Virus record (IMG/VR): IMGVR_UViG_3300047499_000113
Span: 176,016-240,015 of that record
DNA length: 64,000 nucleotides
Direction: 5' to 3' (one strand)
In this document: one piece after another, positions 3,859 through 62,686 of the stretch
Numbering within the stretch: position 1 is the stretch's first letter
How the letters are laid out: the number at the start of each line of letters is the position of its first letter
The notes under the pieces: model-generated
Told to the model about the DNA's origin: nothing
Database searches by the model: none
Seen by the model: the letters and a program-made list of their open reading frames with translations, nothing else
Program-made: the position numbers and the translations under genes

Positions 3859-4314
3859 TCAGCTCTCCATTACCTCAAAGACTTCTTCGTGAACTTGTCT
3901 CAAAAGAAGGCCCTTGCAGGCCCAGGTCCCGAACTTCTTCCACTTCGGCCGGTGCGTGTAGCCATGCATCCAGCGTTTCTTGGCGTTGAACGGAACCTCT
4001 ATGCTCTTGACAGTAATGCAAAGATGTTTCGGACTCACCTCAACGGTCAACTTCCCGTGCCGATGGCTCGTGCCGCGGTTCACAGCTATCAGGTCGAATG
4101 TGATTTCGACGGCACCAGGCAAGTAATTGCTGCTGAGGGTGCCTGGCTGAACTTGGAAATATCGAGAAAGATAGAACGCCCCAATCACAGACACGATGGA
4201 TGGACGAGCCCACTCGCAAGCCGCAGGCAATTCCTTTGGTAGCAGGTCCGCAGGCTGGAGCACTTGCTCCGTCATCTGCTGAGCCTCATCCACTGTGAAA
4301 AGGTGGGTCTTCAC
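3859..4314 (-). CDS. Hypothetical protein with C-terminal VMES motif
   Basis: 151 aa ending EVFEVMES-stop. Confidence 0.6.
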   Translation of the reverse strand: MKTHLFTVDEAQQMTEQVLQPADLLPKELPAACEWARPSIVSVIGAFYLSRYFQVQPGTLSSNYLPGAVEITFDLIAVNRGTSHRHGKLTVEVSPKHLCITVKSIEVPFNAKKRWMHGYTHRPKWKKFGTWACKGLLLRQVHEEVFEVMES

Positions 4315-4354
4315 GCCGCTATTCTTGGGGTCAAGTTGCCGCTATTCTTGGGGT
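4315..4354. repeat. Perfect 17-bp direct repeat GCCGCTATTCTTGGGGT x2
   Basis: Copies at 4315-4331 and 4338-4354, directly upstream of the GTG at 4314. Confidence 0.9.
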
Positions 4355-4495
4355 ATTAGGTCGCTCCCGCAGCCTGAGCCCGGGAATAGAGAGTCGTAAC
4401 GACTCTTAGCAACATCCCTTTGGATTGATGTCGTCATCGCGGCTTCACGTGCACGGTGCCTCGGGACAGTGAGATTACACCGTCGTCGGGCAGAC

Positions 4496-4687
4496 CTACG
4501 ATTCGTGGACTTGGCGGGCGACGCGAACGATGTATTCTTCCGTAGGTGGCGGGCCTGCGAGTGGTCCCATCCTCGCACCGCACCTCTTGCAGACGCGGAC
4601 GAGCGCGGCCATCGAAGGGTTGCCGGACTTGCGGCGCTCCGTTTTGGGGAGCTTCTGCCACTCGTGGCCAAAGTTACGCGCCGTCAC
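4496..4687 (-). CDS. Small HxW-CxxC protein ending VHES
   Basis: GTG at 4687 with GGGGAG 7 nt upstream; GHEW...CKRCG...VARQVHES. Confidence 0.6.
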   Translation of the reverse strand: MTARNFGHEWQKLPKTERRKSGNPSMAALVRVCKRCGARMGPLAGPPPTEEYIVRVARQVHES

Positions 4688-5576
4688 TGGGTAGCTCCCC
4701 GGCAAGCACTCGTTCGAACCGTTCCCGATTGTAGTTGATGGCAATGAAAGTGCTCGAGTCGTCTGATAGGCGACTGCCCCACTCACCCTTATCTCGGTAG
4801 AGCTGGACTCGAGCAAATTCGCAGATTCCGGGATCGATGGTGGACATGGCGGCGAGTGGGTCGTGGAACGCTTTGCCTTTCGGGTTTTTCCCAAGATATT
4901 TCGCCATCCCTTCTCGCATGAGAGCAAAGCCCGGGTTCGGATTCTCGACTCGCATCATGCGCTCGTGTGTCGCCGGATCGTAGATGACGCCGTGGCACAC
5001 GTTCTTGGAGACCAGGTGTCGCTTGAGCACAGACGGGCTCTCGAGCACGTGTTTGGCCGCCGGGACGTCGCCGTTGAGGTTGTAAGTCGCACACGTCTCT
5101 CGGCCACGGAACTTCTCGAGTCTGTACTGCTCAGGCACGACGCTATCGCCGGCGAAACCGCCTTGAATGAACATGCTCGGAATGATGACGCCGGCGCCGA
5201 GCGCCGCCGAGATGTTGCTCAAAGCCGCTCCCGTGATGACTGTCGTGTTGGGGTGACTGTGGAAGACGTCCTGCAGCACGCAGGATCCGGTCCCATCAGG
5301 AGACTTGGGAGGGATAGGCCCAAGCCAGTCGTAATGGAAGCTCGAGACGCAGTCCTTCGGATGGTTCGGGCGCGCGGAACCAATAGAGGTGTTCTTGTGA
5401 TCGAGCCGGTCGAGAACGTACCGGACAAGTCCAACCTGCGCTCTCGAACCTGGAGTGACAGTCACCGCGCGCAGAATGACCCCGGGATGCGTGCACAGCA
5501 GGCACAGAGCCATCACATCATCAGGGTCACTTGTTTCCATATCAAAAGCTATGTTCAAGCGCATCGGAAACTCCAA
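4674..5576 (-). CDS. Nucleoside hydrolase (IUNH family)
   Basis: N-terminal DMETSDPDD Asp cluster, 'TGAALSN', 'TYNLNGD', 'HDPLAA'. Confidence 0.8.
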   Translation of the reverse strand: MEFPMRLNIAFDMETSDPDDVMALCLLCTHPGVILRAVTVTPGSRAQVGLVRYVLDRLDHKNTSIGSARPNHPKDCVSSFHYDWLGPIPPKSPDGTGSCVLQDVFHSHPNTTVITGAALSNISAALGAGVIIPSMFIQGGFAGDSVVPEQYRLEKFRGRETCATYNLNGDVPAAKHVLESPSVLKRHLVSKNVCHGVIYDPATHERMMRVENPNPGFALMREGMAKYLGKNPKGKAFHDPLAAMSTIDPGICEFARVQLYRDKGEWGSRLSDDSSTFIAINYNRERFERVLAGELPSDGA

Positions 5577-5599
5577 TAGTTCGAGCGTACAATACGTGC

Positions 5600-5851
5600 A
5601 TGCCCAACTACCAGATCGAAATGCTCTGGCGCTGCGTTTGCAACGCCAAACAAGTCAACAAGGGCTTGTCCCGGCATTGCAGTAGTTGTGGGCGTCCGAA
5701 GGGCCCCGACATGGAGGAGTTCTTCCCGGATGATATAAGTATCCGGGCTGCCCTCCGGCGTGGAAATCTTGCCGTAGTCACTCGATGGGGACGATTGCAG
5801 CGTCGCCGCGGTCACGAAACTGCGGAAGTGACACTTCGTGCAGGATGTTGA
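5600..5851 (+). CDS. Small zinc-ribbon protein, possibly truncated
   Basis: MPNYQIEMLWRCVC...CSSCG; TACAAT 6 nt before the ATG; 3' end overlaps the convergent gene. Confidence 0.4.
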   Translation: MPNYQIEMLWRCVCNAKQVNKGLSRHCSSCGRPKGPDMEEFFPDDISIRAALRRGNLAVVTRWGRLQRRRGHETAEVTLRAGC

Positions 5852-6551
5852 AGTGCTTGTCCGAAATGGCGAAGAACACGGTCCAATACTTGCCGTACTT
5901 GGAGTTCTTGACCGCGTCCTCGAGTTCGTGCTCGGCCGCTTCGACTTCGTCCTGAGAACGACCCTGCTTGCGCATCATCTGCACTTGGACCTGCTTCTCG
6001 CGAGCCTCCTCGGCGATGAGGTCCTTAATGCGTTGAAGAGCGCGGAAGAAACGATGACGGACCCGGCCTTGGGTCAGGTTCATCTGCTTGGCGATCTCTG
6101 ACTGGCATGTAGTCTCGTACATGCGCCAGAGAATCTCCCTGTCCTGATCACAGAACTTGGGCCCAAGTTCCAGCTCGAACAGCTCCTCGTCCAACTCGGG
6201 AATGGTGCGGAGGAATTGAATGCGCTTGATGCCGCGGTGAAGACGATAACTCACGGCCGCCTGGGTGATGCGGAACAACTTGGCTATCTGTTCCTGCTTC
6301 ATCTTGTCGTGGTGATACAGACGGATGAGATCCGCCTCGCGCGGCGGGATCCTATCCAGGTACGGCGCCACGGCGGCGAAATCGAGTGACCGGCTCTCGG
6401 CTTTCAGCTCCTCTTCGGGCTCCGGCGCGAGTTGCGCTTCGATCAGCTCGTCGAGGTCTTGTTCGGTGTCGGCGTCGTAGCCGAGCCTATCTTTGGTGCT
6501 GTAGCGAGAAGAGAGATTACTCGGATCCTGGATCAGGATATGGGATGACAT
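5778..6551 (-). CDS. Protein with two tandem sigma70 region-4-like HTH domains
   Basis: 'IPPREADLIRLY...QEQIAKLFRITQAAVSYRLHRG' and 'DQDREILW...QSEIAKQMNLTQGRVRHRFFRA'. Confidence 0.7.
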   Translation of the reverse strand: MSSHILIQDPSNLSSRYSTKDRLGYDADTEQDLDELIEAQLAPEPEEELKAESRSLDFAAVAPYLDRIPPREADLIRLYHHDKMKQEQIAKLFRITQAAVSYRLHRGIKRIQFLRTIPELDEELFELELGPKFCDQDREILWRMYETTCQSEIAKQMNLTQGRVRHRFFRALQRIKDLIAEEAREKQVQVQMMRKQGRSQDEVEAAEHELEDAVKNSKYGKYWTVFFAISDKHFNILHEVSLPQFRDRGDAAIVPIE

Positions 6552-6721: not shown

Positions 6722-7759
6722 TCAGATACCTTCGAGCCAGCTCTCGAGAGGCACCTGACCATCGCCAACGGCTGCCGGCGGGCGGAAGGGACCGAAGTCC
6801 AGACCCGAGATAAGTAGGTCTTCCCGACAGATGTCGACTGCCAATTGGTAGTCCTTCTTACCGGGTTGGAGGCTCGAGGAGAGGTCCAGGTCGTCCTGGA
6901 GACCCACGAGCCTCCAGTTCATCTCTATACGGGCTCGGTGCTCGAGGGTCTTGGTCCGTTCGCCGTTGCTGAAGCTGGTCAGGCCCGAGGCGAACACATC
7001 TTCCACGGTGGGAAGATGGCACACAGTCATAGCTGTCTTCTTGCGCAGTAGCGGTACGCCGGGGATGCTGTCCGAGTTGTCGCCGCAAAGCGACTTGAAC
7101 ATCCGCACCTGGCCGCAAGGGACCTTGGGGTGTTTCCCCTTGAGGAGTCGACCCCACACCTCGGCGGACGCCGCGGCATCAACGAACCGTTGCTCCTTCG
7201 AGCCCGGACGGAACATCACCACACGCGGATCTGTCAGGAGTTGGAAGAAGTCCTTGTCGTCCGACACGACGATGCGGACGGAGTCCGGATGCTGCTTGCA
7301 GAAGCTGGCGATGAGGTCGTCGGCTTCCTCCGCATGATTGTGGTAGACGTCGCACCCGAGGAGTTGCAAGATATGTGACAGGACGGCGATGTCACTCTCG
7401 GCCTCGAAACCGTCGCGGAGCCGGAGTGGGATCTTGACCGTCTCTTCACCGAAGAGCTTGAGATCGTGCTTGGTGTCCTCGCGCTTGATCTTGTACGTGG
7501 GATCGAGCGCTCGCCGGCGCACGGGTGCCCCGTCGAAGAAGATGGATACAGACGTGAACGGCTGCATCTCATAGAGCCAAGAACACAGGAACGTAAGGAA
7601 CCCGTAGATGATGCCGGTCGGATACCCTTTCGGGCCACTCATCAGCGGCCTGCCATCTTTGAGACGGCCTTCGACGAAGACGTAAAATGCTCGCTGCAGG
7701 ACGTTATTCCCGTCCACCACGACGTGGCGTTTGGTCTCCGCTCCTCCGATGTGCCTCAC
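6722..7759 (-). CDS. 5'-3' exonuclease / flap endonuclease (PolI N-terminal type)
   Basis: VVDGNN, EADD, SDDKDFFQL and GDNSDSIPGV motifs. Confidence 0.9.
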   Translation of the reverse strand: MRHIGGAETKRHVVVDGNNVLQRAFYVFVEGRLKDGRPLMSGPKGYPTGIIYGFLTFLCSWLYEMQPFTSVSIFFDGAPVRRRALDPTYKIKREDTKHDLKLFGEETVKIPLRLRDGFEAESDIAVLSHILQLLGCDVYHNHAEEADDLIASFCKQHPDSVRIVVSDDKDFFQLLTDPRVVMFRPGSKEQRFVDAAASAEVWGRLLKGKHPKVPCGQVRMFKSLCGDNSDSIPGVPLLRKKTAMTVCHLPTVEDVFASGLTSFSNGERTKTLEHRARIEMNWRLVGLQDDLDLSSSLQPGKKDYQLAVDICREDLLISGLDFGPFRPPAAVGDGQVPLESWLEGI

Positions 7760-8367
7760 GTGTCGTCCTTCTGCAAATACGAGGCTGGAAAGTCCATGAA
7801 GATGCCGCCTCCCTTGATGGAGCGCAGGTTCACGAATACCTGGACTTTCTCACCGTCGTCGTAGATCATCGCGACGCGACCGGGGAGTCCCTTGTAGCTA
7901 CCCTTGGTGATTTTGACGCGCTGGTCTTCCTTGAACCTCGAGGCCGTAACTTTCAGGTCCTGCATGCCGTTGCGCATGTGAGACAGGTCCTTGTCGGTCA
8001 AGAGTGAATAGACTCGCTTCTTCTCACCATTGACCGAGCTGAGACTGCTCAGCACCATGTTGAAGTAGTTGGTCTCGGCGAGTTTGTGGTAACTGACGCC
8101 AGGTTCGTACTGCACGAAGACGTAGCCTTCGGAGTACCAGGTAGTCAGAGAGTCATCAATCCCCTTCTGGTTGATGGCCGGGACGAAGACGTCCAGATCG
8201 TTTCGAGCAAGGATCTGATGAGCAGATCGAATGATCAGCTGGATATTCTTCTCCCGCTCCCCAAGGGCCGTCAGCTGCACGACCACCCACTGAGAGACGG
8301 GTGGCGGAGCAGCGGGCGGAATCGATGCTTTCTTATTCTTGACCTTTGATCCTTTGGAGGAAGCCAC
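7756..8367 (-). CDS. nusG: NusG-family transcription elongation/antitermination factor
   Basis: NGN-like 'WVVVQ', 'VFVP', 'GYVFV' and KOW 'VKITKGSYKGLPGRV'; GTG at 8367 has AAGGAG 7 nt upstream. Confidence 0.8.
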   Translation of the reverse strand: MASSKGSKVKNKKASIPPAAPPPVSQWVVVQLTALGEREKNIQLIIRSAHQILARNDLDVFVPAINQKGIDDSLTTWYSEGYVFVQYEPGVSYHKLAETNYFNMVLSSLSSVNGEKKRVYSLLTDKDLSHMRNGMQDLKVTASRFKEDQRVKITKGSYKGLPGRVAMIYDDGEKVQVFVNLRSIKGGGIFMDFPASYLQKDDT

Positions 8368-9982: not shown

Positions 9983-9983
9983 T

Positions 9984-10502
9984 TCATTTGCCCTTTAGAC
10001 TGTCGCCGAGTGCTGCCAGGTCTGTGTTCCACTTGCCGTGGCGTGCTGCAATTTCCGGGAATTCCTGCACTTGAGGTGGCCTCAATCGGTACTTGTACTC
10101 GCCCGTGGTCTCGTCCTCGATGGCGACGCATCTGGCAAGCAGATGGTCGACCAGGGCAGTACGTTGATTCGGCTGCAAGCCGTTCCAGACATCGAGGGCG
10201 ACCGTCAGTACGTAGTCAGCACCTTCATCTCCGGCCTTTTGAGCGAGGTGCTTTTCGGTGGGATTGGCCTTCCGGATAGTGCCCGGAACGGGAGTGCCTG
10301 CCGCTTTGGACGCACGATTGCGGCACAAGCAGAGGATGTGAGCGTTCACAAGCTCGTGGTAATACTTCGGCACGAGCTTTTGAACTATCTCGAAGACCGA
10401 CTCCGAGTCCGCGATGATGAGCGGTTCGGGGGCCGCCTTTTGCTTCTTGTCCCGTACGGCGTCGTTCTCATTGGATCGTTCTGCAGTTTGCACGGTCACC
10501 AT
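9984..10502 (-). CDS. Putative phage metallopeptidase-like protein (degenerate motif)
   Basis: 'DVWNGL..NQRTALVDHLL', 'QEFPEIAARHG.W' resembles the phage metallopeptidase family. Confidence 0.55.
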   Translation of the reverse strand: MVTVQTAERSNENDAVRDKKQKAAPEPLIIADSESVFEIVQKLVPKYYHELVNAHILCLCRNRASKAAGTPVPGTIRKANPTEKHLAQKAGDEGADYVLTVALDVWNGLQPNQRTALVDHLLARCVAIEDETTGEYKYRLRPPQVQEFPEIAARHGKWNTDLAALGDSLKGK

Positions 10503-11300: not shown

Positions 11301-11900
11301 TCAGTCAGGCGGGCAGAAAGCCAACCCGTTCCGGACGTTATGTACCAGAATACTCGAGCGACCGCCCACGAACTGAGTGTACATGCCGACGAAGTCCGGC
11401 CGTGAGCAGAACACCGGAAACTCGACCTTGGACGGTGTCACGCGGCAGACTTTGCAGAACACGCCGTCCACCAGGTCCTTGCCGGCGGCCTTGTTGAAGG
11501 CCGTGACGGCTTTACCCTCAGGAGCTAGTACCATGTGCGGCTGGGACTTCATGCCTGATGCTTTCTGTACGTAGCTAAAAGCCGCATGAAGTTGTTTCTT
11601 GCCGCGAAAGATGTTCGGCCAGTTCTCCTTGACGGCAAGCTCGTACGCCGACTTCATCAGGTCGCCGATGAGTTCGTCGATTCTATCCGAGTCGTACTTG
11701 AAAACGCCGCTACGAAGCTTGCCGTCCTGCGTGAGCTTGCGCGACACGAGGAAGCGCTTCTCGGGCACATCCATGCCCGAGCCACTGATGACTGCAGGCA
11801 CAAATGCTGGCTTGGCTGGCGTCTCTATCCAAAGCGGGACTGCTTGGATGTTGGCGCGCGAGCGGTGCAGGTCATGGTCAAGAAGCCGGAGGAGAATCAT
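11301..11900 (-). CDS. Hypothetical protein
   Basis: 199 aa in operon. Confidence 0.6.
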   Translation of the reverse strand: MILLRLLDHDLHRSRANIQAVPLWIETPAKPAFVPAVISGSGMDVPEKRFLVSRKLTQDGKLRSGVFKYDSDRIDELIGDLMKSAYELAVKENWPNIFRGKKQLHAAFSYVQKASGMKSQPHMVLAPEGKAVTAFNKAAGKDLVDGVFCKVCRVTPSKVEFPVFCSRPDFVGMYTQFVGGRSSILVHNVRNGLAFCPPD

Positions 11901-12465
11901 CTTTCTGATCGTACCACAAATTCGACGTCAACTCGGGCGGCGGGAGTTGCGGGAGAGCAGGAATTGGCTTCCAGAATTTGGACTGGAGCCAGAACCAGAA
12001 CCGTTCGAGGAACGTCAGCGGGACTTCGTGAATGCGTTCCCCGAGGACCCACTGGAGCGTGGCGACGTCCCGGTAGTTGTTGAACACGTACTCGTCGTCC
12101 GAGAGCCTATCCAGAAAGTCCTTGCGAGCCTGCTCGAGTGTGACTCGTGGCTTGAACATCGGGCAGCGCTTCGCTTTGTCGTCCGAATCGCATGTGTCTC
12201 CCTGCCATGTCGCCGCATTGTCGGCGCCGTACATGCACAGGTGCACCGATTGGTCGTGTCCGACCACGACGAGCGTTTTCTGGATTCGAGGAGCCAGCTC
12301 CATTTCAGTCTCGAGCGAGGGCTTGTACTCGAGCTGCGCCGGCGCGTGCTCTTCATTGAAGACGCAGTTCTTGTAGCACCGAGCCTGCGTCGCTTCCACA
12401 TGTTTGTGGGCGTACCGAGACCGGAGCTTTTTGAGCCGCGACTCCACCTGAGCACGTGTCTTCAC
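11878..12465 (-). CDS. Cys-containing hypothetical protein
   Basis: 195 aa, overlapping its neighbours. Confidence 0.6.
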   Translation of the reverse strand: MKTRAQVESRLKKLRSRYAHKHVEATQARCYKNCVFNEEHAPAQLEYKPSLETEMELAPRIQKTLVVVGHDQSVHLCMYGADNAATWQGDTCDSDDKAKRCPMFKPRVTLEQARKDFLDRLSDDEYVFNNYRDVATLQWVLGERIHEVPLTFLERFWFWLQSKFWKPIPALPQLPPPELTSNLWYDQKDDSPPAS

Positions 12466-16432: not shown

Positions 16433-16465
16433 ACCTGACGGTACACCGAGGACTTATTGGAAGGG

Positions 16466-18736: not shown

Positions 18737-18776
18737 AGGGAAACCGGTTTTAGTGCCTTTGTAAGATTCTCCCTAT

Positions 18777-19373
18777 ATGAGAGTTTGCAAAAGCTGCTCC
18801 AAAGATGAAAATACAACAAAGTTCAACGGAAGAAGCAGGTCTTGCATTGAATGTCACAAGGCAAGATGCGTCGAAAGAAGAGCTTTCATAAAGCTATCGA
18901 TCCTTGCCCACTACAGCAACGGGGAAACGAAGTGTGGTTGCCATGGGTGCGGGGAGTCGAGAGTCGAATTTCTCACTGTTGATCACATCGACGGAGACGG
19001 CCGCTCCCATCGAAAAAAGATAAGAATTCCGTTCTATGAGTGGCTCTGGCAGAACGAGTTCCCGCCAGGGTTTCGGGTTTTGTGTTTCAACTGCAACTGT
19101 TCGATTGGACAATGTGGTTATTGCCCTCATATTGAGAAGTCAAGGATTCCGAGCCTGGAACACTTGAAACATGTGAAGATACTTCCAAGTGGACGAGGTG
19201 GGAGGGCTTGGAACGCGAAGCTAACTCCAGATGCCGTGAGAAACATCAAGATAGGTAAAGAGAACGGCGTTCCGATCAAACAGTTGGCCCGACAGAATGG
19301 CGTAAGCCCGGCCGCCATACGAGGAATCCTTAGAGGCGAAACGTGGAAACACGTGACTACTGGACCTTCTTAG
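18777..19373 (+). CDS. Free-standing HNH-type endonuclease with C-terminal HTH
   Basis: CxxC clusters, TVDHIDG, LCFNCN, 'NAKLT...' HTH; AT-richer than and antisense to its neighbours. Confidence 0.8.
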   Translation: MRVCKSCSKDENTTKFNGRSRSCIECHKARCVERRAFIKLSILAHYSNGETKCGCHGCGESRVEFLTVDHIDGDGRSHRKKIRIPFYEWLWQNEFPPGFRVLCFNCNCSIGQCGYCPHIEKSRIPSLEHLKHVKILPSGRGGRAWNAKLTPDAVRNIKIGKENGVPIKQLARQNGVSPAAIRGILRGETWKHVTTGPS

Positions 19374-19418
19374 CGGCCTGCACAGTGTTAATCCGGGCAC
19401 GATTCGATTGTCGATCAG

Positions 19419-20225: not shown

Positions 20226-20263
20226 ACCCTGCCAGGATACATCCGCCACTCTGGAGCTTACGA

Positions 20264-20843: not shown

Positions 20844-21278
20844 CTAGGAGGCCATCACCTTGGCCACCTCGATAAGTTCCAGGATGGTCTCGATGCTTTC
20901 GACCTGTGTGTAGAAGAAGTAGTCGTGCCTCTGACCCTTGAGATAGGTCGCGCGGATGATCCCCGAGTATTTCTCCTGCAGGATTCTCTCGACTGCTTCC
21001 TGACTTGGCATACCTGGAAGGTCGCCGATATCACGGATCCAAACCATTCGGACCTTCGCCATCTCGCCGACTCGCGGTGCACAATATCCGAGACCCGGAC
21101 GCTCGAGCTCGACGTAGCAGATGAAGCCGGCCGCGGCGAGCATGTCCCGCCCATGCTCGCGGAACAGATCTTCGACTGCTTTCAGGTACTGCTTGTAACT
21201 GGAAGAGTCACCCTCAGAGAAGTAGGTGATTCTCCGCTCAGGCGTAGCTTTCGATTTCTTGAGCGTACCCTTTGGCAT
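20844..21278 (-). CDS. Hypothetical protein ending VMAS
   Basis: 144 aa, divergent from the ligase N-half. Confidence 0.55.
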   Translation of the reverse strand: MPKGTLKKSKATPERRITYFSEGDSSSYKQYLKAVEDLFREHGRDMLAAAGFICYVELERPGLGYCAPRVGEMAKVRMVWIRDIGDLPGMPSQEAVERILQEKYSGIIRATYLKGQRHDYFFYTQVESIETILELIEVAKVMAS

Positions 21279-22389
21279 GCCTGAGGAGTCCCTGGAAGAA
21301 GCCCGAACCCGCCTCCGACGCTACCAGGAGGCTTATTACAACCTCGAGCCCCTCGTACCCGATTCCGAGTACGACGCGCTGGTCGAGTGGGTGCGGCAGC
21401 AGGATCCAAACGCGCCCGAACTCAAGAAGGTCGGGGCACCAGTCCCAACCCATTCAGTTTGGGAGAAGGTCGCGCACGACATCCCCATGGGTTCGCTCAG
21501 CAAGGCCAACAACGAGGCGGAGTTCCTCGAATGGGCCGGCAAACTCTCCGCCGAGACTTGGTTCATCACGCATAAAATCGACGGATCGTCGATGGAGCTG
21601 GTCTACAAGGCCGGCAAGCTCATCAGATGCGTGACTCGCGGCGACGGGATGATCGGCGAGGATGTGACCGCAAACATCGCCCAAGTTCCGTCAGTCCCCA
21701 AAGAACTGCCGGTGAAGGTCGATGTGACGGTCCGGGGCGAAATCGTCATGTTCAAGGACGTGTTCAAGGAAAAGTATGCCGAGGAATACGCCAATCCGCG
21801 CAACACGGCCGCCGGCAAGGTCCGACAGAAGAAGGATGGAGGCGAGTCATGCCAGGACCTCGAGTTCCTGGCCTACTGGATGAAGATGGGCAACCATCTC
21901 GACCAGCCCAAGACGATGCACGTCACTTTCATGTGGCTGCAAAATCACGGCTTCAAGACGCCGGCCGGTCTCGCATCCGCCGAACTCGACGCCATCAAAT
22001 CCCACTTCGCGCAGACGGCCAAAGAACGAGATGCGGTCCCGTACGAGATTGACGGGATGGTCGTATCCGTCAACAGTCTCGAGCTGATGGAGGAGTTGGG
22101 GGACCTCAACATGCGCCCGCGCGGTCAAATCGCGTGGAAATTCGAAGCCCTCATGGGCATCACGCGCATGGTCGCGGTCAAATGGCAGGTGGGCCCCTCC
22201 GGACGCGTCACTCCGGTCGCTGAGGTCGAGCCCGTCGAGGTCGGAGGGGTCACCATCACGAGTGTCAGCCTGCACAATCTTTCCATCTTCCGAGATCTCA
22301 AGCTCTGGAAGGGGTGCCGGGTCCTCGTGTCCCGGCGCAACGACGTCATCCCGTATATCGAGAAGAACCTCGACCTCGAAGCGGCATGA
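21277..22389 (+). CDS. ligA: NAD-dependent DNA ligase, N-terminal half (Ia, adenylation, OB)
   Basis: YY...DSEYD, PMGSL, KIDG (motif I), TRGDG, RGE, NPRN.AAG, IDG.V, AWKF, QVGPSG, RRNDVIP (motif VI), then stop. Confidence 0.92.
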   Translation: MPEESLEEARTRLRRYQEAYYNLEPLVPDSEYDALVEWVRQQDPNAPELKKVGAPVPTHSVWEKVAHDIPMGSLSKANNEAEFLEWAGKLSAETWFITHKIDGSSMELVYKAGKLIRCVTRGDGMIGEDVTANIAQVPSVPKELPVKVDVTVRGEIVMFKDVFKEKYAEEYANPRNTAAGKVRQKKDGGESCQDLEFLAYWMKMGNHLDQPKTMHVTFMWLQNHGFKTPAGLASAELDAIKSHFAQTAKERDAVPYEIDGMVVSVNSLELMEELGDLNMRPRGQIAWKFEALMGITRMVAVKWQVGPSGRVTPVAEVEPVEVGGVTITSVSLHNLSIFRDLKLWKGCRVLVSRRNDVIPYIEKNLDLEAA

Positions 22390-22616
22390 ACGCCCACAAA
22401 TGGGTAATGGGTGCGCCCGTCGCCAAGTATAATGACGACGGGTCGGTCTCGAAATACGTGATGAAGTTCGTATGCACCGTTTGCGGCACTGAGGTGAGAC
22501 TCGGAAGGCCGAACTCTCTTGTGAGCTTCGACTTGCCACTACCCGACGAGATGCGCGATAATCATATCGACGCAGATTGCGATATGACGCAAGTACGTCA
22601 GGTGATGGAGAGCTAG
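22386..22616 (+). CDS. Small HxW-CxxC protein ending VMES
   Basis: MNAHKW...CTVCG...CDMTQVRQVMES; ATGA overlap with the ligase stop. Confidence 0.7.
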   Translation: MNAHKWVMGAPVAKYNDDGSVSKYVMKFVCTVCGTEVRLGRPNSLVSFDLPLPDEMRDNHIDADCDMTQVRQVMES

Positions 22617-22820
22617 ATGCGCGAGCACAAGTGGGTTCCCGTCTCGTCCGACTGCACGGAATGGGAGTGTGAGCTTTGCGGCTTCGAAACCGTCAAAGCC
22701 GGAGTCCCGTGCCGGAACCTACCGCTCATCTACACCGTTCCTGAGACAGGCGAAGAGCTGAAGTTCTACTGCGACGACATCGCAGCCATCGTCTTCGTCA
22801 TCGACGTGCACGATTCCTAG
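22617..22820 (+). CDS. Small HxW-CxxC protein ending VHDS
   Basis: MREHKW...CELCG...CDD...VIDVHDS. Confidence 0.7.
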   Translation: MREHKWVPVSSDCTEWECELCGFETVKAGVPCRNLPLIYTVPETGEELKFYCDDIAAIVFVIDVHDS

Positions 22821-42488: not shown

Positions 42489-43157
42489 ATGTCGTTAACA
42501 AGCCACTCCAAAAACGTCTTCGAGGCTACCATCGAAGATGGAAAGATCAGCGGGAAACGCCACGGCCGCGTTGCGATGGCTTCTCCGCAGGCCGCAGCTT
42601 ACTTCGACAAACTCAAAAGCGAGCTGAAACTCGCGAAGATCGAGGGCTACGAGATCCGAGCAGAAGAGAACACGCGTGACGCAATTGTGAAGGCGAAGAT
42701 CCGCGTGAGTTTCAACGGCAAGGAGTATGCGCAGAAAGTCCAGCTCTCGAGGTCCGGCGCTTACAAAGCAGAAACTCCGAAAGAGCCCATCGATGTCGGC
42801 AAGGACCCGGAGACTAAGAAGTTCTGCCTGCACATCGCTGAGGAAGCGCGCAGAGTGACCGGCCAGGCGACCTGGGATTACACGAAGGACGGGAATCCCA
42901 TCCCGCACGAAGACATCGTGCTCAGGCAGGTCCGCGAAGTGCTCAAGAACGACGTGCGCGATACGAACATGCGTCTCGTCCAGGAAATGCGGGACCTTCT
43001 CGAGCAGGACGACGTCAAACGCGAGGCTCTCATCGCTTTCGAAGACGTGATGCGAGACCGAGTGCACAACGCACTCGAAGAGTTCGAGAAACTGCCGCCC
43101 GAGACGATGCACAAGTTTCTTGACGAGATGTACTGCAAGAAAATCCACGACGCATGA
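42489..43157 (+). CDS. Hypothetical protein ending IHDA
   Basis: Probable start MSLTSH at 42489. Confidence 0.6.
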   Translation: MSLTSHSKNVFEATIEDGKISGKRHGRVAMASPQAAAYFDKLKSELKLAKIEGYEIRAEENTRDAIVKAKIRVSFNGKEYAQKVQLSRSGAYKAETPKEPIDVGKDPETKKFCLHIAEEARRVTGQATWDYTKDGNPIPHEDIVLRQVREVLKNDVRDTNMRLVQEMRDLLEQDDVKREALIAFEDVMRDRVHNALEEFEKLPPETMHKFLDEMYCKKIHDA

Positions 43158-43408
43158 GTAAACAAGCCGGCAACGGGCACGAGTGGCGAGACCTCTCGGA
43201 CAAAGAAGTCATCTTTCACAACCCGGAGCTTCGCGAGAAGGCAGCAAAGAGCGGGGAAGAGGGATCTCAGTGGATGAGCCGCAAGTCCTTGCCGTCTTGG
43301 TACAAAACACGTGAGTGCACCAGGTGTGGACTCTTGTCTCCAGATTACCTCGATCCGGAGAACTCATCCTGTAACATAGTCGTCGTGCGCGGCATCCACG
43401 AAAGTTGA
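43154..43408 (+). CDS. Small HxW-CxxC protein ending IHES
   Basis: GHEW...CTRCG...CNIVVVRGIHES. Confidence 0.7.
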   Translation: MSKQAGNGHEWRDLSDKEVIFHNPELREKAAKSGEEGSQWMSRKSLPSWYKTRECTRCGLLSPDYLDPENSSCNIVVVRGIHES

Positions 43409-43640: not shown

Positions 43641-43871
43641 TTGAGGAGGCACGTCTGGCCCGAAATGAAGCCCACCGAGATTCAAGGGCAGTGGAAAAGC
43701 GTGTGCCCTCGGTGTGGAACAGTCATTTGGGGCTCGATGGGCCACAAGCCAACGCCGGCGGACCTACAGTTCCAAGACATCCTGGAGATTGCGATGAGCA
43801 ACTTGCCCGGCGAGTCATGGAGTCCTAAGTGCACGATTGGGGATTCGTGTCAGAGCGTCGAAGACCGCTGA
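43641..43871 (+). CDS. Small HxW-CxxC protein
   Basis: RRHVW...CPRCG. Confidence 0.5.
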   Translation: MRRHVWPEMKPTEIQGQWKSVCPRCGTVIWGSMGHKPTPADLQFQDILEIAMSNLPGESWSPKCTIGDSCQSVEDR

Positions 43872-44017
43872 ACAGCTACGGGTCGGACAGAGAAGCGACC
43901 TGGAAGTGCAGCAAGTGTCTGAAGACGACGACTACAGACGACAAAGACGAGCGGCCGTATGTCGGACACGACGACAACTGCGACATGACCGCCGTCCGAG
44001 CAGTGATGGAGAGTTAG
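43829..44017 (+). CDS. Small CxxC protein ending VMES (start uncertain)
   Basis: WKCSKC...CDMTAVRAVMES. Confidence 0.55.
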   Translation: MHDWGFVSERRRPLNSYGSDREATWKCSKCLKTTTTDDKDERPYVGHDDNCDMTAVRAVMES

Positions 44018-50845: not shown

Positions 50846-51283
50846 TCCGTAGACCTCTCCGAGGTACTCCATGGCCTGCTCGTACTCGAGCACGCGCTTG
50901 GGATCAAGCCTGCGCAGGTAGCGACGAAAGAGTGTCATCTCCCACGCTTCTCGGAGCGCTTCCTCATTGAGTTGCTTCTCGGCGATCTTGCCGAACTCAT
51001 CGGATAGCGCACGCCCAGCACACTCAGACACAAAATCGACAGCGGGTTTGATGTCATGGTACTCGCTGGGTCGATGCGTCTGGAGTTTCTTGTCGAGCGT
51101 ATCACCGATGTCCTGGACTGGCATGCCAGGTAGAATGTCGGCCGTCAGCCGCAGTCCCATCTTGAACATCACATCCACGATGTAATGCGGACCGGTGGGG
51201 CTCTTGACGATCTTCAGGTAGCGCAGTCCAAAGAGCCCGTCCTGCACGTTCAGGATAGGCTGGATGACGGGCGGCTGGGTCAT
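50798..51283 (-). CDS. Hypothetical protein ending VQDS
   Basis: Start MTQPP via ATGA overlap. Confidence 0.55.
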   Translation of the reverse strand: MTQPPVIQPILNVQDGLFGLRYLKIVKSPTGPHYIVDVMFKMGLRLTADILPGMPVQDIGDTLDKKLQTHRPSEYHDIKPAVDFVSECAGRALSDEFGKIAEKQLNEEALREAWEMTLFRRYLRRLDPKRVLEYEQAMEYLGEVYGSGLGPGGTARAVQDS

Positions 51284-51507
51284 GACTCCATAATACGCTT
51301 GACGACCTCGAGGTCGCAAGACAGGTAGCCGAATGACTCGTCGTTGTCGACTGTCTCTTCGTGAACGATGCGACCGTCGTAGCGCTTGCGGATAGTCTTC
51401 TTCTCGTCGAGCTTGAAGACACCACACCTTTTGCACTTGTACGTGAAGCTGATGCCGCGTTCTTCAGTTCCCCACTCGCCGTACTTTTCCCACTCGTGCT
51501 CGGTCAC
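51280..51507 (-). CDS. Small HxW-CxxC protein ending IMES
   Basis: MTEHEW...CKRCG...CDLEVVKRIMES. Confidence 0.7.
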   Translation of the reverse strand: MTEHEWEKYGEWGTEERGISFTYKCKRCGVFKLDEKKTIRKRYDGRIVHEETVDNDESFGYLSCDLEVVKRIMES

Positions 51508-51923
51508 GATTCCATGATCGGTTCGACCACGTAGTGCTCCTGGAGCACGAGCGTGGCTTGCTCGAGGGTCAGCCGGTTGGTGATGCCGTACGCGCGCAGA
51601 GCCGCGGAGAACGCCTTGCGTTTCCAGAGCAGCTCGAATTCGGCGATGTGCTTGTCGAGATCCTGGATGTGCCAGTCCAATGCACCGTCCTTGCCGACGC
51701 TCTCGACGAGGCTATGGGCCACCTCGTCGAGAATCCTCTGCCTGTTGCCTTGTGGCTTCGGAGACCACTGGAACTGGTCCGGCTTCTCGTAGCCGTAGAG
51801 ATCCACGGTGAAGTTGGTCTCGGTGTTGTCAGACGACATCACCTTGACTTTGAGCACCTTGGCTACGCTCTTGGCGGTCGGGTGGCGCTCGAGTGATACG
51901 TCAGCGACGTGGTAGGTGCGCAC
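51504..51923 (-). CDS. Hypothetical protein ending IMES
   Basis: 139 aa ending VVEPIMES. Confidence 0.65.
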   Translation of the reverse strand: MRTYHVADVSLERHPTAKSVAKVLKVKVMSSDNTETNFTVDLYGYEKPDQFQWSPKPQGNRQRILDEVAHSLVESVGKDGALDWHIQDLDKHIAEFELLWKRKAFSAALRAYGITNRLTLEQATLVLQEHYVVEPIMES

Positions 51924-57486: not shown

Positions 57487-57527
57487 CGGGCGGCCTCCTT
57501 CACGGGAGTGCCGCCCGTTTGTTTATT
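57487..57527 (+). terminator. Intrinsic terminator-like hairpin
   Basis: CGGGCGGC-CTCC-loop-GGAG-T-GCCGCCCG followed by TTTGTTTATT. Confidence 0.7.
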
Positions 57528-57922
57528 CAGCTCGTCATGATGTCGTCGATGCTTTTGGCGACGTGGTCAGCGATGACGATGGAGCAGTCGGTGTGGCGGA
57601 GGTGGTCGCGCCAATCGTTGAAGACCTTGAACACCCACTCGAAGTCGGCATCTTGAGGGGCCTCGTAGAGGAGCTGGCCGTCCATCTTGTCGATGTTCGT
57701 GATCCGGTCGTGCTCCAGGACCTCGAAGCACATCCGCGACAGGCGGTGGACCTTCACGAGGTCCTGAGCTTCGGGCTTCTCTCGCCGGACGAGCGACTTG
57801 ATGCTCGAGCGAAGAAACTCGACCAGAGGATAGGTCTGGTGAGGCCGCAGCTGCACGTCCAGCAGGCCGTGGTGCAGACTGTATTCGACGCCGCAGACTC
57901 CGCCCTTCACATCTACCATCAA
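57527..57922 (-). CDS. Hypothetical protein ending IMTS
   Basis: 131 aa. Confidence 0.6.
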   Translation of the reverse strand: MMVDVKGGVCGVEYSLHHGLLDVQLRPHQTYPLVEFLRSSIKSLVRREKPEAQDLVKVHRLSRMCFEVLEHDRITNIDKMDGQLLYEAPQDADFEWVFKVFNDWRDHLRHTDCSIVIADHVAKSIDDIMTS

Positions 57923-60040: not shown

Positions 60041-60430
60041 TCAGCTGCCGTGGACTGCTGCCACCTGGAAGTCCTCTTGCTCGAGGACGAGCAGGGGCTC
60101 GGTGCCATCGGCTTCGTGCTCGCCGGTCCAGCCGAAACCGACCCACTCCTTGCGCACGCGCGCGAGCTTGCGCCGGCGGCCGTTGCCGATCATGCAGCGG
60201 AACTCGGCGGGCATGGGCAGCTTGTCGACCGATTCGACCATCATCGACTGCAAGGTCTTGAACGAGATGGTCTCCCGGTCTTTCCCGGTCAGCTCGTCTC
60301 GCAGCATCTTGGTGCGCGAAGGTTTCGGCGCGGACTTTCTGGCTCGTGACTTCACGCAAGGTCGGTACGGGACAGGACTGCAATTTACAGAATGTTGGTC
60401 CGCGCCGAAGGCGCGGACAAGCTCGGGCAT
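60041..60430 (-). CDS. Hypothetical protein
   Basis: 129 aa; start uncertain. Confidence 0.45.
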   Translation of the reverse strand: MPELVRAFGADQHSVNCSPVPYRPCVKSRARKSAPKPSRTKMLRDELTGKDRETISFKTLQSMMVESVDKLPMPAEFRCMIGNGRRRKLARVRKEWVGFGWTGEHEADGTEPLLVLEQEDFQVAAVHGS

Positions 60431-60461
60431 CTTCCTATGTGTGTCAGACGGGTGACGACTC

Positions 60462-60782
60462 CTAGTCAGCCTCGTCCTGCTCTTTCCACCACTCGATGAA
60501 CCACTTCGTCAGGTGGTAGTAGTGAATCATGGCAGCGACGAAAGTGACGGTCATCACTATCTCGCACCATAGCGGGACGGGCTTGCCTATCATCCAAATG
60601 AAGAAGTGGTCCACGAACTTCACGACGTCATTACGTAGTGCACCGTGCACCGTGTACTCTTCGCAGTTGAATTTCTTGCCGTCCTGCTCGACCTTGGCGG
60701 TGGCCGCAGGCACGTAATCGGGCGGCACGCGGATACGCTCGAATACGCCGCCGCAGCGCTCGCACTTGTAGCGACGGCGCAC
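60462..60782 (-). CDS. Zn-ribbon + TM small protein
   Basis: CERC and a hydrophobic segment. Confidence 0.5.
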   Translation of the reverse strand: MRRRYKCERCGGVFERIRVPPDYVPAATAKVEQDGKKFNCEEYTVHGALRNDVVKFVDHFFIWMIGKPVPLWCEIVMTVTFVAAMIHYYHLTKWFIEWWKEQDEAD

Positions 60783-61875
60783 GGCGCGACCTGACGAAAT
60801 CGTGAACCTTCCGCGGCCCCGCGGCCGCGGGCGGGGCGCCTACGCTCTGGCCGTGACCGAACTTCTTGCAGATGTGACTAGTGGGCAGCACCCACTAATT
60901 GTACATCAGTTCCAGCGGTTGCCGTCCGGCGATCTCGTGCGGGTCTTGCCGGCGGCGGGCTGCGGACCGGACTCGTCCGCATCGGCGTCGCCAATCTCCA
61001 CTTCGTCCTTGTCGCCGGTGACGCCCGCGCATTGAAGCGACTGCGTTTCGACCAGGGCGCCTTCTGCCTTGGGCGGAGGTGGCGATGGTGCAAGTCACGT
61101 AGCCGTCGTTGTCCGAATCGATTTGGGCGCAGTTTGGGCTTGCCCTGAACCTTGATGCCCAGGTCGTCGGCCCACTTCTGCGCGGCCTGCTCGGGCGGAA
61201 CGGTGTTGTGGCGCTCGTCGCAGGCGACCTGCAACCCATCCAGCACAGGGTGAGAATGATGGCTTTCTTCATTTGCACGAGCTGTGCAGCTCGAACGGTC
61301 CAATTTACAGCAGTGGTCAGCGCCGGGCGATGATGCTTTTGGGAATGCGCGCCAGACGCTCTTTTGCGGGCAGCTCGGACTTGTACCAGACGTCGACCAG
61401 CCGGAACATGTTCTTGGTGCAGATTTTGCGGCACATGTTGTCGACTTTCCGGCTCGGACGACCGGGCGAGATGTTCAGGTCCCACATGGACTCGTAGACC
61501 TTGTTCATCAGCTCCATGATTTGGTGCTGGGTCCAGTCCTGCATATGCGCCAGGACGCGCTCTTTCTCACTGATGCGGTTGCAGGAAGACTCGAACTGGC
61601 GAAGGAACTGCTGGCCGAACGCGCCCAGGTCGGCCGGCTCTTTCGTGACGACGATGGGGCTCGACCATGTACTGCGACTTGTCCCGCCAGGCGTACGCCA
61701 GGTAGTGGTGCAGCCACAGGGTGCCGGCGTCGCGGATGAAGATGACGGACGAAATGGACCCGTGTCCGTCTTCGTCGGAAAAGACTGTCCGGGTGGGCGC
61801 TCACTGTTCGAGACTGCTACACTGGCGCGGGATTCATTTGCGAAAATGCCGCTGCCGTAGGCGTACGCTCCCCAG

Positions 61876-62420
61876 GTGAAGCCGAAAAAGTTCGACGTGC
61901 GGGATTTTCCGCTGGAAATCGTGCGGCGTGCGCTGGAAACGGGGCGCCCGGTGTCCCGGTTGGAGACCGTGGGCTACTGCATCCCGGCGCTACTGCTCAT
62001 CTACTACACGTGCTGGTCGGTCTACCGGCAGGGCTACTGGCACTGGGTGGACGCGCTGGAACTCGCCGCCGGCGCGGGCATCTTGTGGCTGTTCATCTAC
62101 AAACATCGGCTGGGCGGCAGGGACCGGCAACTTTTGGCGCGGGCCAAGCAGATGGTCAAAGGAAAGACGCAGTACGAGAGGGAGCGCTGCACGCTGGCCG
62201 AGCAGGCGGAGGTTGCCGAAGGCAGGTGCCCGGACTGCGGCGAAAGTCAGCTGATGGCGGGACCGACTGGCGGGTTCTCGACCAACGTCCAGTGCGGCGA
62301 CGTCGAATGCGGCGCTCTCGCTTCAACATCATGGGCCCGTTCGGCATAGAGCGAATCTCTCCGGCGTCGCCGCGCAAAAGTATCGACCTGTCGAGCCGCG
62401 AAACCCCGTTCAGGAACTAG
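61876..62420 (+). CDS. Membrane protein with C-terminal Zn ribbon; apparent frameshift near 62312
   Basis: Two TM helices, CPDC...C..EC; a plausible end SRFNIMGPFGIERI lies in another frame. Confidence 0.5.
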
Positions 62421-62422
62421 AC

Positions 62423-62686
62423 GTGAAGCCCGATGAGGCGGTTATCCGCTTTGCGAATGTGAACCCGCCGCCCGGACTTTGCTGGCATATGGTCCGGGTC
62501 GACCCGACGAGAATGAACTCGGACTGGAAGCAGTGCCGAGAGCCCGCCCGGCCGTACCTGGCCAGCAACGCGCACGGAGACCACATCTTGCAGTGGGTCT
62601 GCGACTCTTGCGCCCGGAGCGCCCAAATCTTCGGAACTGCACTGAGCGAGGAAGAGGTTGCAGTGGCCGAGGTCATGTGCTCGTGA
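62423..62686 (+). CDS. Small Cys protein ending VMCS
   Basis: ...VAVAEVMCS. Confidence 0.6.
   Translation: MKPDEAVIRFANVNPPPGLCWHMVRVDPTRMNSDWKQCREPARPYLASNAHGDHILQWVCDSCARSAQIFGTALSEEEVAVAEVMCS

Follow-up and report, generated by a model that had tools for sequence, protein, structure and literature searches.

Why do so many small proteins of a huge phage end in the same few residues? In a window of 64,000 nucleotides (positions 176,016 to 240,015 of IMG/VR record IMGVR_UViG_3300047499_000113, an uncultivated phage of 240 kb), an earlier note had pointed to 13 predicted proteins with C-termini resembling V-x-x-[V/I]-[M/H]-[E/D]-S. It had proposed that these are unrelated proteins sharing a short terminal helix recognized by one partner, which might act as a packaging or injection signal, a degron, a scaffold-docking tag or a conjugation site. 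To evaluate this proposal we re-examined the window, its relatives in metagenomes, and the structures predicted for two of the carriers. The observation withstood this scrutiny and proved stronger than first described: about fifteen proteins of this phage, and dozens more in its relatives, carry what looks like an undescribed end-of-chain tag. The interpretation is only partly supported, as about half of the carriers in the window belong to a single protein family, and none of the proposed functions is proven.

Identification and significance of the shared C-terminal motif

All 13 C-termini were recovered at the positions and on the strands given in the earlier note, with the mixture of serine and stop codons noted there, and two further cases were identified (Table 1). 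A six-frame scan for the strict pattern [VI][MH][ED]S found it 10 times in about 128,000 positions, with nine of these lying immediately before a stop codon. Given the window's own amino acid composition, about 0.004 strict C-termini are expected among its 89 genes (Poisson P about 5e-27), and even if the zinc-ribbon paralogues described below are counted as one event, three independent strict events remain. The looser ends VMAS, IHDA, IMTS, VMCS and VQDS fall within the variation of the wider family, in which position -2 is tolerant and position -3 is M in 83, H in 13, Q in 4 and L in 3 cases. As the earlier note had stated, none of the recognizable enzymes encoded in the window carries the motif.

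Table 1. Carriers of the C-terminal motif in the 64,000-nucleotide window. Zinc ribbons are predicted from sequence; loci labelled L are the phage loci examined for comparison, L038 being from the close relative.
Position (strand)	Length (aa)	Body	C-terminus	Motif	Observations
3859..4275 (-)	138	Non-ribbon	…VFEVMES	Strict	Next gene starts 30 nt downstream with its own AAGGAGG; orthologues at 66-67% identity keep …EEVFEVMES
4496..4687 (-)	63	HxW/CxxCG zinc-ribbon paralogue	…ARQVHES	Strict	Has lost the Cys at -12, which its orthologue in L026 keeps
20844..21278 (-)	144	Non-ribbon	…VAKVMAS	Loose	No coupled downstream gene
22386..22616 (+)	76	Zinc-ribbon paralogue	DCDMTQVRQVMES	Strict	Coupled to the ligase gene upstream and to the next ribbon gene downstream; homologue in L001 ends …CDEHQIMKVMKS
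22617..22820 (+)	67	Zinc-ribbon paralogue	…VIDVHDS	Strict	Convergent with the next gene, so no downstream Shine-Dalgarno role is possible
42489..43157 (+)	222	Non-ribbon	…CKKIHDA	Loose	Chimeric compared with two separate genes in the close relative
43154..43408 (+)	84	Zinc-ribbon paralogue	…SCNIVVVRGIHES	Strict	Orthologue at L038 10653
43665..43828 (+)		Zinc-ribbon paralogue broken by a frameshift	…DCDEQLARRVMES-stop	Strict	Not in the earlier note; 5' part (…CPRCG…) in one frame, 3' part (VMES end) in another; an uninterrupted copy exists in the close relative (L038, ORF ending 11074)
43829..44017 (+)	62	Zinc-ribbon paralogue	…NCDMTAVRAVMES	Strict	Metagenomic homologue P0014
50798..51283 (-)	161	Probable gene	…ARAVQDS	Loose	Q at -3 is a minority variant of the family; coupled by an ATGA overlap to the ribbon gene upstream; the close relative keeps …VVQDS
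51280..51507 (-)	75	Zinc-ribbon paralogue	…SCDLEVVKRIMES	Strict	The ribbon that was modelled
51504..51923 (-)	139	Cys-free	…HYVVEPIMES	Strict	The non-ribbon carrier that was modelled
57527..57919 (-)	130	Non-ribbon	…SIDDIMTS	Loose	Followed by a G+C-rich inverted repeat that, read by eye, looks like a terminator
60041..60307 (-)	88		…QVAAVHGS	Loose	Not in the earlier note
62423..62686 (+)	87	Ribbon-like (…WVCDSC…)	…VAVAEVMCS	Loose	

A predicted zinc-ribbon family with a fixed C-terminal end

Contrary to the earlier note's view that the carriers are unrelated, seven or eight of those in the window are paralogues belonging to one large, unannotated family with the signature HxW…CxxCG…DCDxxxVRxVMES-COOH. 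At least 343 clusters (at 50% identity) match its profile in metagenomes, but searches of Pfam-A, PHROGs, NCBIfam, PDB and BFVD recovered no significant sequence or fold match, with only weak sub-threshold hits to DUF4379 and zinc knuckles and generic zinc-ribbon neighbors in BFVD. Like the small zinc-ribbon and treble-clef proteins of phages (NrdR-N-like, TFIIS-like and DUF4379), these proteins display a CxxC(G) knuckle on a β-hairpin and a further ligand at the start of a helix; they differ in their H-x-W start, most often with His at residue 4, and in their own fixed C-terminal helix. The CxxC and the Cys at -12 are invariant and the His is near-invariant, which fits the zinc-ribbon or treble-clef pattern of a CxxC knuckle plus two further ligands, although the binding of metal is inferred from sequence and model alone. 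An AF2 model of the 75-residue paralogue (pLDDT 79) shows four strands and a confident C-terminal helix spanning residues 64-74. In this family, the motif is thus the terminal helix that starts at the presumed fourth zinc ligand, and is part of a domain rather than an appended tag. In 106 of 115 small hits the chain ends exactly 11 residues after the last Cys, and the polar positions (R/K at -6, E/D at -2 and S at -1) are also conserved, which would not be needed in a purely packed helix. However, the helix persists internally in tandem-ribbon proteins (P0109 and P0133), indicating that a free end is not needed for folding.

Distribution of the motif on dissimilar protein bodies

The same 7-12 residue end is also found on many bodies with no detectable similarity to each other. 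In 11 loci from related phage contigs (three of 240-436 kb, plus shorter fragments), with GC contents of 48-72%, we identified 64 tagged ORFs, whose bodies fall into 52 BLAST clusters once the last 12 residues are removed. Only about 22 are ribbons, and the ribbon HMM aligns to the others only over their last 7-16 residues, though it remains possible that the apparently unrelated bodies are paralogues that have diverged beyond recognition. The strict motif is likewise locked to the chain end in the relatives: 8 of 8 occurrences are terminal in L017, 9 of 11 in L020, 4 of 4 in both L035 and L024, 5 of 5 in L038 and 2 of 2 in L026. Two pattern scans of IMG/VR gave hits concentrated in three contigs of 240-436 kb, plus one 7.8-kb contig with real tags, whereas the same pattern gave no real tag in cellular genomes (185,579 genomes; 596 Gb).

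Several features indicate that the constraint acts on the peptide and not on the DNA. The terminal serine is encoded by a mixture of TCN and AGY codons, and Glu by GAG and GAA in a ratio of 21 to 13, which matches genome usage. M and H differ at all three codon positions, and yet they swap between orthologues (VMES at L008 7103 versus IHES at L020 1717). The earlier note had named three conditions that would count against it, namely a lack of enrichment, restriction to sites where ATGGAG serves as a Shine-Dalgarno sequence, and a lack of conservation in homologues; none of these holds, as the enrichment is extreme, 23 of the 64 tagged ORFs have no coupled downstream start and yet keep the tag, and homologues conserve it.

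The last 12 residues of the tagged proteins have a helical hydrophobic moment of 1.13, against 0.84 in untagged genes (p = 1.6e-4), and a net charge of -1.3, and Pro is absent from the last nine residues in 63 of the 64. In the Cys-free 139-residue protein the body has a pLDDT of about 90 in the AF2 model, but the last eight residues have a pLDDT below 50 and are unstructured; this result rests on one model built from a five-sequence alignment.

Comparison with known terminal signals

[quoted passage not shown] The T4 sequence, however, is N-terminal, about 10 residues long, removed by the prohead protease, and carried by a handful of proteins, whereas the present tag occupies the last 7-12 residues of the chain, shows no evidence of cleavage, is unrelated in sequence and is carried by about 15% of genes. 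Its [V/I]-[M/H]-E resembles the T4 prohead-protease site (L/I)-x-E, but D, K, T, G and A also occur at position -2, of which D, K, T and G would not fit a cleavage site, and only one residue follows.

C-terminal sorting or docking signals that require the free chain end, such as encapsulin cargo-loading peptides, PTS1 (-SKL), KDEL, the -EEVD of Hsp70/90 and ssrA-type degrons, are similarly position-locked, only a few residues long and carried by many unrelated clients of one receptor. The sequence of the present tag matches none of these, as it ends in an acidic residue plus Ser rather than a hydrophobic residue, LAA, SKL or GSL, and no shell, receptor or protease gene was found with it. Specifically, it lacks the non-polar (…LAA) or basic MuA-type ends of ClpX degrons. 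It also lacks the hydrophobic last residue of PDZ ligands, the last residue being Ser in 47 of 52 phage-locus cases and 85 of 106 family members. Unlike encapsulin cargo peptides, it has no G-S-L-type motif, and no HK97-fold shell gene is next to any tagged array. It also differs from the β-clamp-binding motif (QL[S/D]LF), which is carried by replication and repair enzymes: position -5 is variable, being Q in only 22 of 106, and no polymerase, ligase or nuclease carries the tag. Encapsulation peptides of bacterial microcompartments are also short amphipathic terminal helices, joined by a linker to unrelated bodies, but they are about 18 residues long, are not end-locked to the residue and are not acidic, and no microcompartment shell genes were seen in any locus examined.

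Interpretation and alternative explanations

Taken together, these observations suggest that the shared ending is a portable peptide module of 7-12 residues with the consensus [C/S/T]-[D/E]-x-x-[I/V/L]-V-[R/K]-x-[V/I]-[M/H]-[E/D]-S-COOH, forming a short, acidic, amphipathic helix or tail that must be the very end of the chain. The analysis itself establishes that selection acts on the peptide, that the module is confined to a clade of uncultivated phages, that it is the terminal helix of one large zinc-ribbon family, that it also sits on dozens of bodies with no detectable similarity, and that it is a low-confidence, unstructured tail in the one non-ribbon body modelled. It is an inference, which we hold with no more than moderate confidence, that the ending is a docking peptide read in trans by one conserved partner. 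This partner is most likely phage-encoded, because the tag barely changes across phages of 48-72% GC, and all tagged proteins would therefore be clients of one machine, which might load them into the capsid for co-injection, subject them to timed proteolysis, or recruit them to a hub or to each other. No receptor was identified, nothing in the window looks like a peptide-binding module, and the one peptidase, PhageMetallopep, also occurs in low-GC huge-phage contigs whose fetched 6.5-kb loci and two pattern scans showed no tags.

A more far-reaching, and on present evidence unlikely, possibility is that these huge phages run their own C-terminal address code, in which a free-carboxylate signal (Φ-x-x-Φ-[M/H]-[E/D]-S) would be read by a dedicated phage receptor that routes about 15% of the encoded proteins, namely dozens of fast-evolving accessory and zinc-ribbon proteins, to one destination, be it the capsid for co-injection, a phage-built compartment or a timed protease. 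This would be a bacterial-virus counterpart of PTS1- or KDEL-type sorting. Huge phages carry hundreds of small genes of unknown function, and a single end-of-chain code shared by roughly one gene in seven would sort a large part of this dark matter into one functional class, and provide an experimental handle in the form of a 12-residue bait peptide for the receptor. If it is a packaging or sorting signal, it could also serve as a portable tag for loading cargo into large capsids. Independently of this question, the zinc-ribbon proteins represent a sizeable family that no curated database holds.

Of the alternatives, the one that survives best, though we consider it unlikely, is that the ending is a purely intramolecular element, i.e. 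the terminal helix of one small zinc-stapled domain, with the other carriers being diverged or chimeric descendants of that family and no common partner existing. The clear ribbon paralogy of about half of the carriers, the confident helix right after the presumed fourth zinc ligand and its internal survival in tandem-ribbon proteins are in favor of this view, and the chimeric gene in the window shows that 3' ends do get recombined. Against it stand the chain end fixed to the residue in 92% of ribbons, the conserved polar positions, the retention of the ending on Cys-free and all-helical bodies of 60-220 residues, its predicted unstructured state in the 139-residue protein, and the preference for β-branched V/I at -7 and -4, which is unusual for a mere packing helix.

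Two specific versions of the docking hypothesis are also each unlikely on their own. In the first, the tag would bind scaffold, protease or shell inside the prohead, such that a variable set of small accessory proteins is delivered with the DNA. The fast turnover of bodies behind a fixed end parallels the T4 internal proteins, but the tag is at the opposite terminus, about 15% of genes would be cargo, and tagged genes sit among replication and nucleotide-metabolism genes rather than structural ones. In the second and somewhat less likely version, a phage or host AAA+ protease or adaptor would read the free end and remove the accessory proteins at a set time. The strict requirement for the chain end, the exposed tail predicted in one carrier and the location of tagged genes in tightly coupled arrays of small accessory genes, as expected of early genes, are compatible with this, but the acidic, Ser-terminated ending matches no known bacterial C-terminal degron, it is predicted to be a folded helix in ribbons, and no protease co-occurs with it (see PhageMetallopep above).

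It is very unlikely that the last dozen residues act in cis as a nascent peptide in the ribosomal exit tunnel to tune termination or re-initiation in the coupled arrays. The motif does abut the stop, is conserved at the peptide level, many carriers are coupled, and TGA is the stop in 36 of 50 tagged ORFs tallied; however, the amphipathic helical periodicity, an N-cap and a zinc-ligand Cys point to a folded element of the mature protein, the tag is present at convergent and terminal genes, and stop usage in the window barely differs from that of untagged genes. Finally, a dual-coding by-product, in which ATGGAG or ATGGAA near the stop serves as the Shine-Dalgarno site of a coupled gene and the peptide is incidental, is refuted as the sole cause, because 15 of the 23 uncoupled ORFs, which include members of convergent pairs (22820 in the window and L021 10435/10440), keep the strict tag, GGAG is present in only 24 of 64 ends and is lacking in the H variants (CAC GAA/GAT), Glu codon usage at -2 equals genome usage, and such a site cannot explain V at -7, R at -6, C at -12 or one fixed reading frame. 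Nevertheless, 41 of the 64 tagged ORFs have a start within -4 to +20 nt, TCATGA and TCGTGA overlaps are common, and GGAG is present in 19 of 41 coupled against 5 of 23 uncoupled ends, so coupling may bias the choice of GAG and of M over H.

Genomic context of the tagged genes

The window is the last 64 kb (positions 176016-240015) of IMGVR_UViG_3300047499_000113, a 240-kb uncultivated phage contig with 59% GC. No close cultured relative was recovered: a megablast search with 12 kb of sequence against 50,697 phage records found nothing, and a protein search with the helicase gave only hits at 34% identity or less. It is a replication and nucleotide-metabolism region, encoding a pol III-type clamp loader, a primase, a FEN-type exonuclease, a RecD-like helicase, a PD-(D/E)XK nuclease, an Mre11-like phosphoesterase, a split NAD-dependent ligase, a class II ribonucleotide reductase carrying a LAGLIDADG intein, PurZ, ThyX, two NT5C nucleotidases and a NADAR-OGFr fusion. 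It additionally codes for a peptide deformylase, a protein with two sigma-70 region 4 domains and a PhageMetallopep protein.

The earlier note's central observation, a peptide shared by the C-termini of many small proteins, is confirmed and can be extended. All thirteen of the C-termini that it listed translate exactly as it had written them, with the stop positions, the strands and the variety of Ser and stop codons that it gave. A six-frame scan recovered the strict pattern [VI][MH][ED]S ten times in the whole window, and nine of these are the last four residues before a stop, whereas the amino-acid composition of the window predicts 0.004 such ends among 89 genes. We identified two further cases: an ORF ending in VMES at 43828, which is the 3' piece of a frameshifted paralogue, and an 88-aa gene ending in VHGS at 60041. 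None of the annotated enzymes carries the ending.

A family of predicted zinc ribbons

The note had described the carriers as unrelated, but this does not hold for all of them. Seven or eight of the carriers in the window, about half, align as a single family of 60-90-aa proteins, which share an N-terminal M-x-x-H-x-W motif, a W-x-C-x-R-C-G knuckle, and an ending of the form D-C-D-x-x-x-V-R-x-V-M-E-S. A profile of 21 members, searched against 1.84 billion representative proteins, detected at least 343 clusters at E <= 0.001, most of which are small proteins matched end to end. In 106 of the 115 small hits the last Cys lies exactly 12 residues from the C-terminus. The ends are VMES (38), IMES (13), VMKS (6), VMDS (5), IHES (5) and similar, and position -3 is M in 83, H in 13, Q in 4 and L in 3.

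Searches of the tagged proteins against Pfam, PHROGs and NCBIfam gave nothing above threshold, and the family has no match in the PDB. In the PDB sequence search the 21-sequence profile gave a marginal, apparently tag-like hit to 2js3 (E = 0.03), but this disappeared when a 111-sequence profile was used and was therefore discarded as chance. An AF2 model built with the family alignment shows a four-stranded sheet followed by a C-terminal helix at residues 64-74 (pLDDT 79). Searches with this model against PDB and BFVD, and with the model of a non-ribbon carrier (see below) against PDB, gave no fold relative at E <= 0.001. His-4, the CxxC pair and Cys-12 are the plausible zinc ligands, although metal binding is only inferred.

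A profile of the ribbon part alone, with the tag columns removed, found more than 35 ribbons in the phage loci, and virtually all of them end in the tag. In this family the ending is therefore the domain's own last helix, as predicted by the model. The same profile was used to look for "empty" ribbons lacking the helix, which might act as receptors for the tag in trans, and essentially none was found. The only clear ribbon in the window without the terminal tag is a ribbon-like protein (…YKCERCG…NCEEYTVHGAL…) that instead continues into a hydrophobic, apparently membrane-spanning segment.

One paralogue is split by a frameshift, with the start and the CxxCG knuckle in one frame and the DCD…VMES end in another. 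The close relative Ga0556619_0000102 (locus L038) has an uninterrupted 54-aa copy of this gene, whereas its copy of the neighboring gene looks disrupted instead. This points to ongoing decay and turnover in the family, or to an assembly error.

The same ending on other bodies

The ending is also found on proteins of the window that are not ribbons, one of which contains no Cys at all (see table). Homologues of two of these non-ribbon proteins, at 58-81% identity, keep the ending. The 222-aa carrier ending in IHDA is a chimera relative to the 180-kb relative: its C-terminal half is 95% identical to a 133-aa protein there, and its N-terminal part is 94% identical to part of a different 216-aa protein.

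Positions of the features discussed in the text (window coordinates; L038 is the locus fetched from the 180-kb relative)
Feature	Window coordinates	Strand	Coordinates in L038
Tagged non-ribbon protein	3859-4275		
Tagged non-ribbon protein	20844-21278		
Tagged non-ribbon protein, chimeric, 222 aa, ending in IHDA	42489-43157		10001-10402 and 11517-12167
Tagged protein, probably non-ribbon	50798-51283		
Tagged non-ribbon protein, no Cys, 139 aa	51504-51923		
Tagged non-ribbon protein	57527-57919		
Tagged non-ribbon protein, 88 aa, ending in VHGS	60041-60307		
Zinc-ribbon paralogue split by a frameshift (stop at 43828)	43665-43871		ending 11074
Neighboring gene, copy in the relative apparently disrupted	43829-44017		
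Ribbon-like protein without the terminal tag	60462-60782	-	
PhageMetallopep protein	9984-10502		
Class II (B12-type) ribonucleotide reductase with intein	23204-27289	-	
PurZ-like adenylosuccinate synthetase homologue	35342-36517	+	17853-20402
NAD-dependent DNA ligase, N-terminal part	21277-22389	+	
HhH+BRCT protein, separate part of the ligase	19419-20069	-	
Protein with two sigma-70 region 4 domains	5778-6551	-	
Protein with weak KOW-motif match	7756-8367		
NADAR-OGFr_N fusion	36987-38057	+	16295-17277
Two adjacent large ORFs with high third-position GC	29792-30886 and 30967-32499	-	

To determine the wider distribution of the ending, two degenerate DNA patterns for C-D-x3-V-x2-[V/I]-M-E-S-stop were scanned over IMG/VR. 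The first gave 13 hits, of which eight were real and lay in four contigs. The second gave 6 hits, five of them in the same three huge contigs; the sixth, in locus L025, is an internal …CDDSLVKLIMES that is followed by Trp and not by a stop. Almost all real hits fall in three huge contigs, namely the present one, a 436-kb contig and a 393-kb contig, with one 7.8-kb contig (L008) also carrying real tags. The same DNA pattern in 596 Gb of bacterial and archaeal genomes gave eight hits, none of which is a C-terminal tag. No ribbons and no tags were found within ±10 kb in distant relatives of the ligase locus (L002, L004-L007). The tag-bearing genomes considered include, besides the present contig and Ga0556619_0000102, the contigs 3300032782_000001 and 3300012980_000004, whereas in the huge-phage relatives 3300036987_000310 and 3300037608_000209 the two pattern scans and the ligase loci showed no tags.

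The loci fetched through these scans are arrays of small genes in which most ORFs end in the tag. L017 has 8 strict ends in 8.3 kb, with every occurrence of the pattern being terminal; L020 has 9 strict ends in 8.0 kb; L011 has 5 in 4.2 kb; L024 has 4; and L021 has 4, including a convergent pair that both end in IMES. A promoter and terminator scan of the L017 array showed no enrichment over shuffled sequences, and hence gives no information on timing. Contigs reached through the protein search extend the distribution to 72% GC, with the locus L035 having 4 strict and 4 loose ends in 6.9 kb.

Over 11 loci we catalogued 64 tagged ORFs, whose bodies fall into 52 BLASTP clusters once the last 12 residues are removed. 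Only about 22 of these ORFs are HxW/CxxC ribbons, and the ribbon HMM aligns to the rest only over their last 7-16 residues. The other bodies include a second Cys/His type ("ARCxxH"), an all-helical type, and a 148-aa type whose two orthologues end in VMES and IHES.

Selection on the peptide versus the DNA

Ser in the tag is coded by both TCN and AGY, and Glu by GAG and GAA in a ratio of 21 to 13; in the window the share of GAG at the tag equals the 68% of the genome. M and H differ at all three codon positions, yet they alternate, even between orthologues. Many tagged genes overlap the next start (TCATGA, TCGTGA), and ATGGAG can double as a ribosome-binding site. However, 23 of the 64 tagged ORFs have no start within -4 to +20 nt, and fifteen of those keep the strict tag, while only 5 contain GGAG. 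Where a coupled gene follows, the -2 codon more often gives GGAG (19 of 41 against 5 of 23) and His variants are rarer (6 of 41 against 7 of 23). Thus, the ribosome-binding site of the next gene seems to bias which allowed tag variant is used, and coupling may influence the choice of codon and of M versus H, but it cannot create V-7, R-6 or C-12 in one fixed frame. The conditions that the earlier note had set for abandoning its claim, namely no enrichment over background, occurrence only where ATGGAG serves as a Shine-Dalgarno for the next gene, or lack of conservation in homologues, are consequently not fulfilled.

Physical character of the ending

The consensus of the last 12 residues is [C/S/T]-[D/E]-x-x-[I/V/L]-V-[R/K]-x-[V/I]-[M/H]-[E/D]-S. 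The segment shows an N-cap followed by acidic residues, and its hydrophobic positions are spaced as in a helix, with a hydrophobic moment of 1.13 against 0.84 in untagged C-termini (p = 1.6e-4). Its net charge is -1.3, and in 63 of 64 cases there is no Pro in the last nine residues. In the ribbon model the segment is a confident helix. In contrast, in the model of the Cys-free 139-aa protein, which rests on only five sequences, the body is confident (pLDDT about 90) but the last eight residues are below 50 and unstructured.

Functional interpretation

The interpretation offered in the earlier note, that of a candidate tagging or sorting system on unrelated proteins, is supported only in part. 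The analysis establishes a peptide-level, end-locked and clade-specific module that sits on many bodies, whereas a reader of the module and any function that it might serve remain inferences. Three features argue that the ending is read by something outside the protein: the chain stops at exactly the same residue in 92% of ribbons; the polar, presumably exposed positions -6, -2 and -1 are conserved; and the ending persists on many unrelated bodies across phages of 48-72% GC. As this GC range implies different hosts, the reader is most likely phage-encoded, or else a universally conserved host machine.

No receptor was found, and the window holds no recognizable peptide-binding module. The PhageMetallopep protein was tested as a co-occurring candidate, but it is also present in low-GC huge-phage contigs whose fetched 6.5-kb loci and the two pattern scans showed no tags, and it was not retrieved from the 436-kb tag-rich contig. 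Hence, it is not specifically linked to the tag. The nearest precedent is the capsid targeting sequence of T4, where a diverse and fast-evolving set of internal proteins shares only a short terminal signal (PMC3012670). However, that signal is N-terminal and cleaved, and the tagged genes considered here lie among replication genes. A degron, or a recruitment or oligomerization helix, fits equally well. Literature searches for the motif, for C-terminal motifs of jumbo or huge phages and for 2js3 found nothing relevant, and no published description of the ending was found.

The main rival explanation, which cannot be excluded, is that the helix is only a structural part of one family whose descendants have diverged or recombined. 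In its favor, the helix is kept internally in tandem-ribbon proteins, and a chimeric 3' end is documented. The readings of the ending as a Shine-Dalgarno by-product or as a nascent peptide were considered and rejected as main causes.

Other features of the region

The ribonucleotide reductase is a class II (B12-type) enzyme of 1361 aa that is interrupted by an intein with a LAGLIDADG endonuclease, and relatives carry the same gene with or without an intein. The presence of a PurZ-like adenylosuccinate synthetase homologue suggests a 2-aminoadenine ("Z") genome; in the 180-kb relative the corresponding gene is over 1190 aa and carries Hint/LAGLIDADG intein domains. The NAD-dependent DNA ligase appears to be split into two genes on opposite strands, one coding for a 370-aa N-terminal part and the other for a separate 216-aa HhH+BRCT protein, with two tagged or unknown genes lying between them. 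The NADAR and OGFr_N domains are fused in a single 356-aa protein here, but are encoded by two adjacent genes in the close relative.

The protein with two sigma-70 region 4 domains is 257 aa long, contains no other sigma regions and is conserved in the 180-kb relative, and a nearby 203-aa protein shows a weak, sub-threshold match to the KOW motif. Finally, two adjacent large ORFs (364 and 510 aa) with no Pfam or PHROG match have the highest third-position GC in the window (0.87-0.88), and may be highly expressed genes of unknown function.
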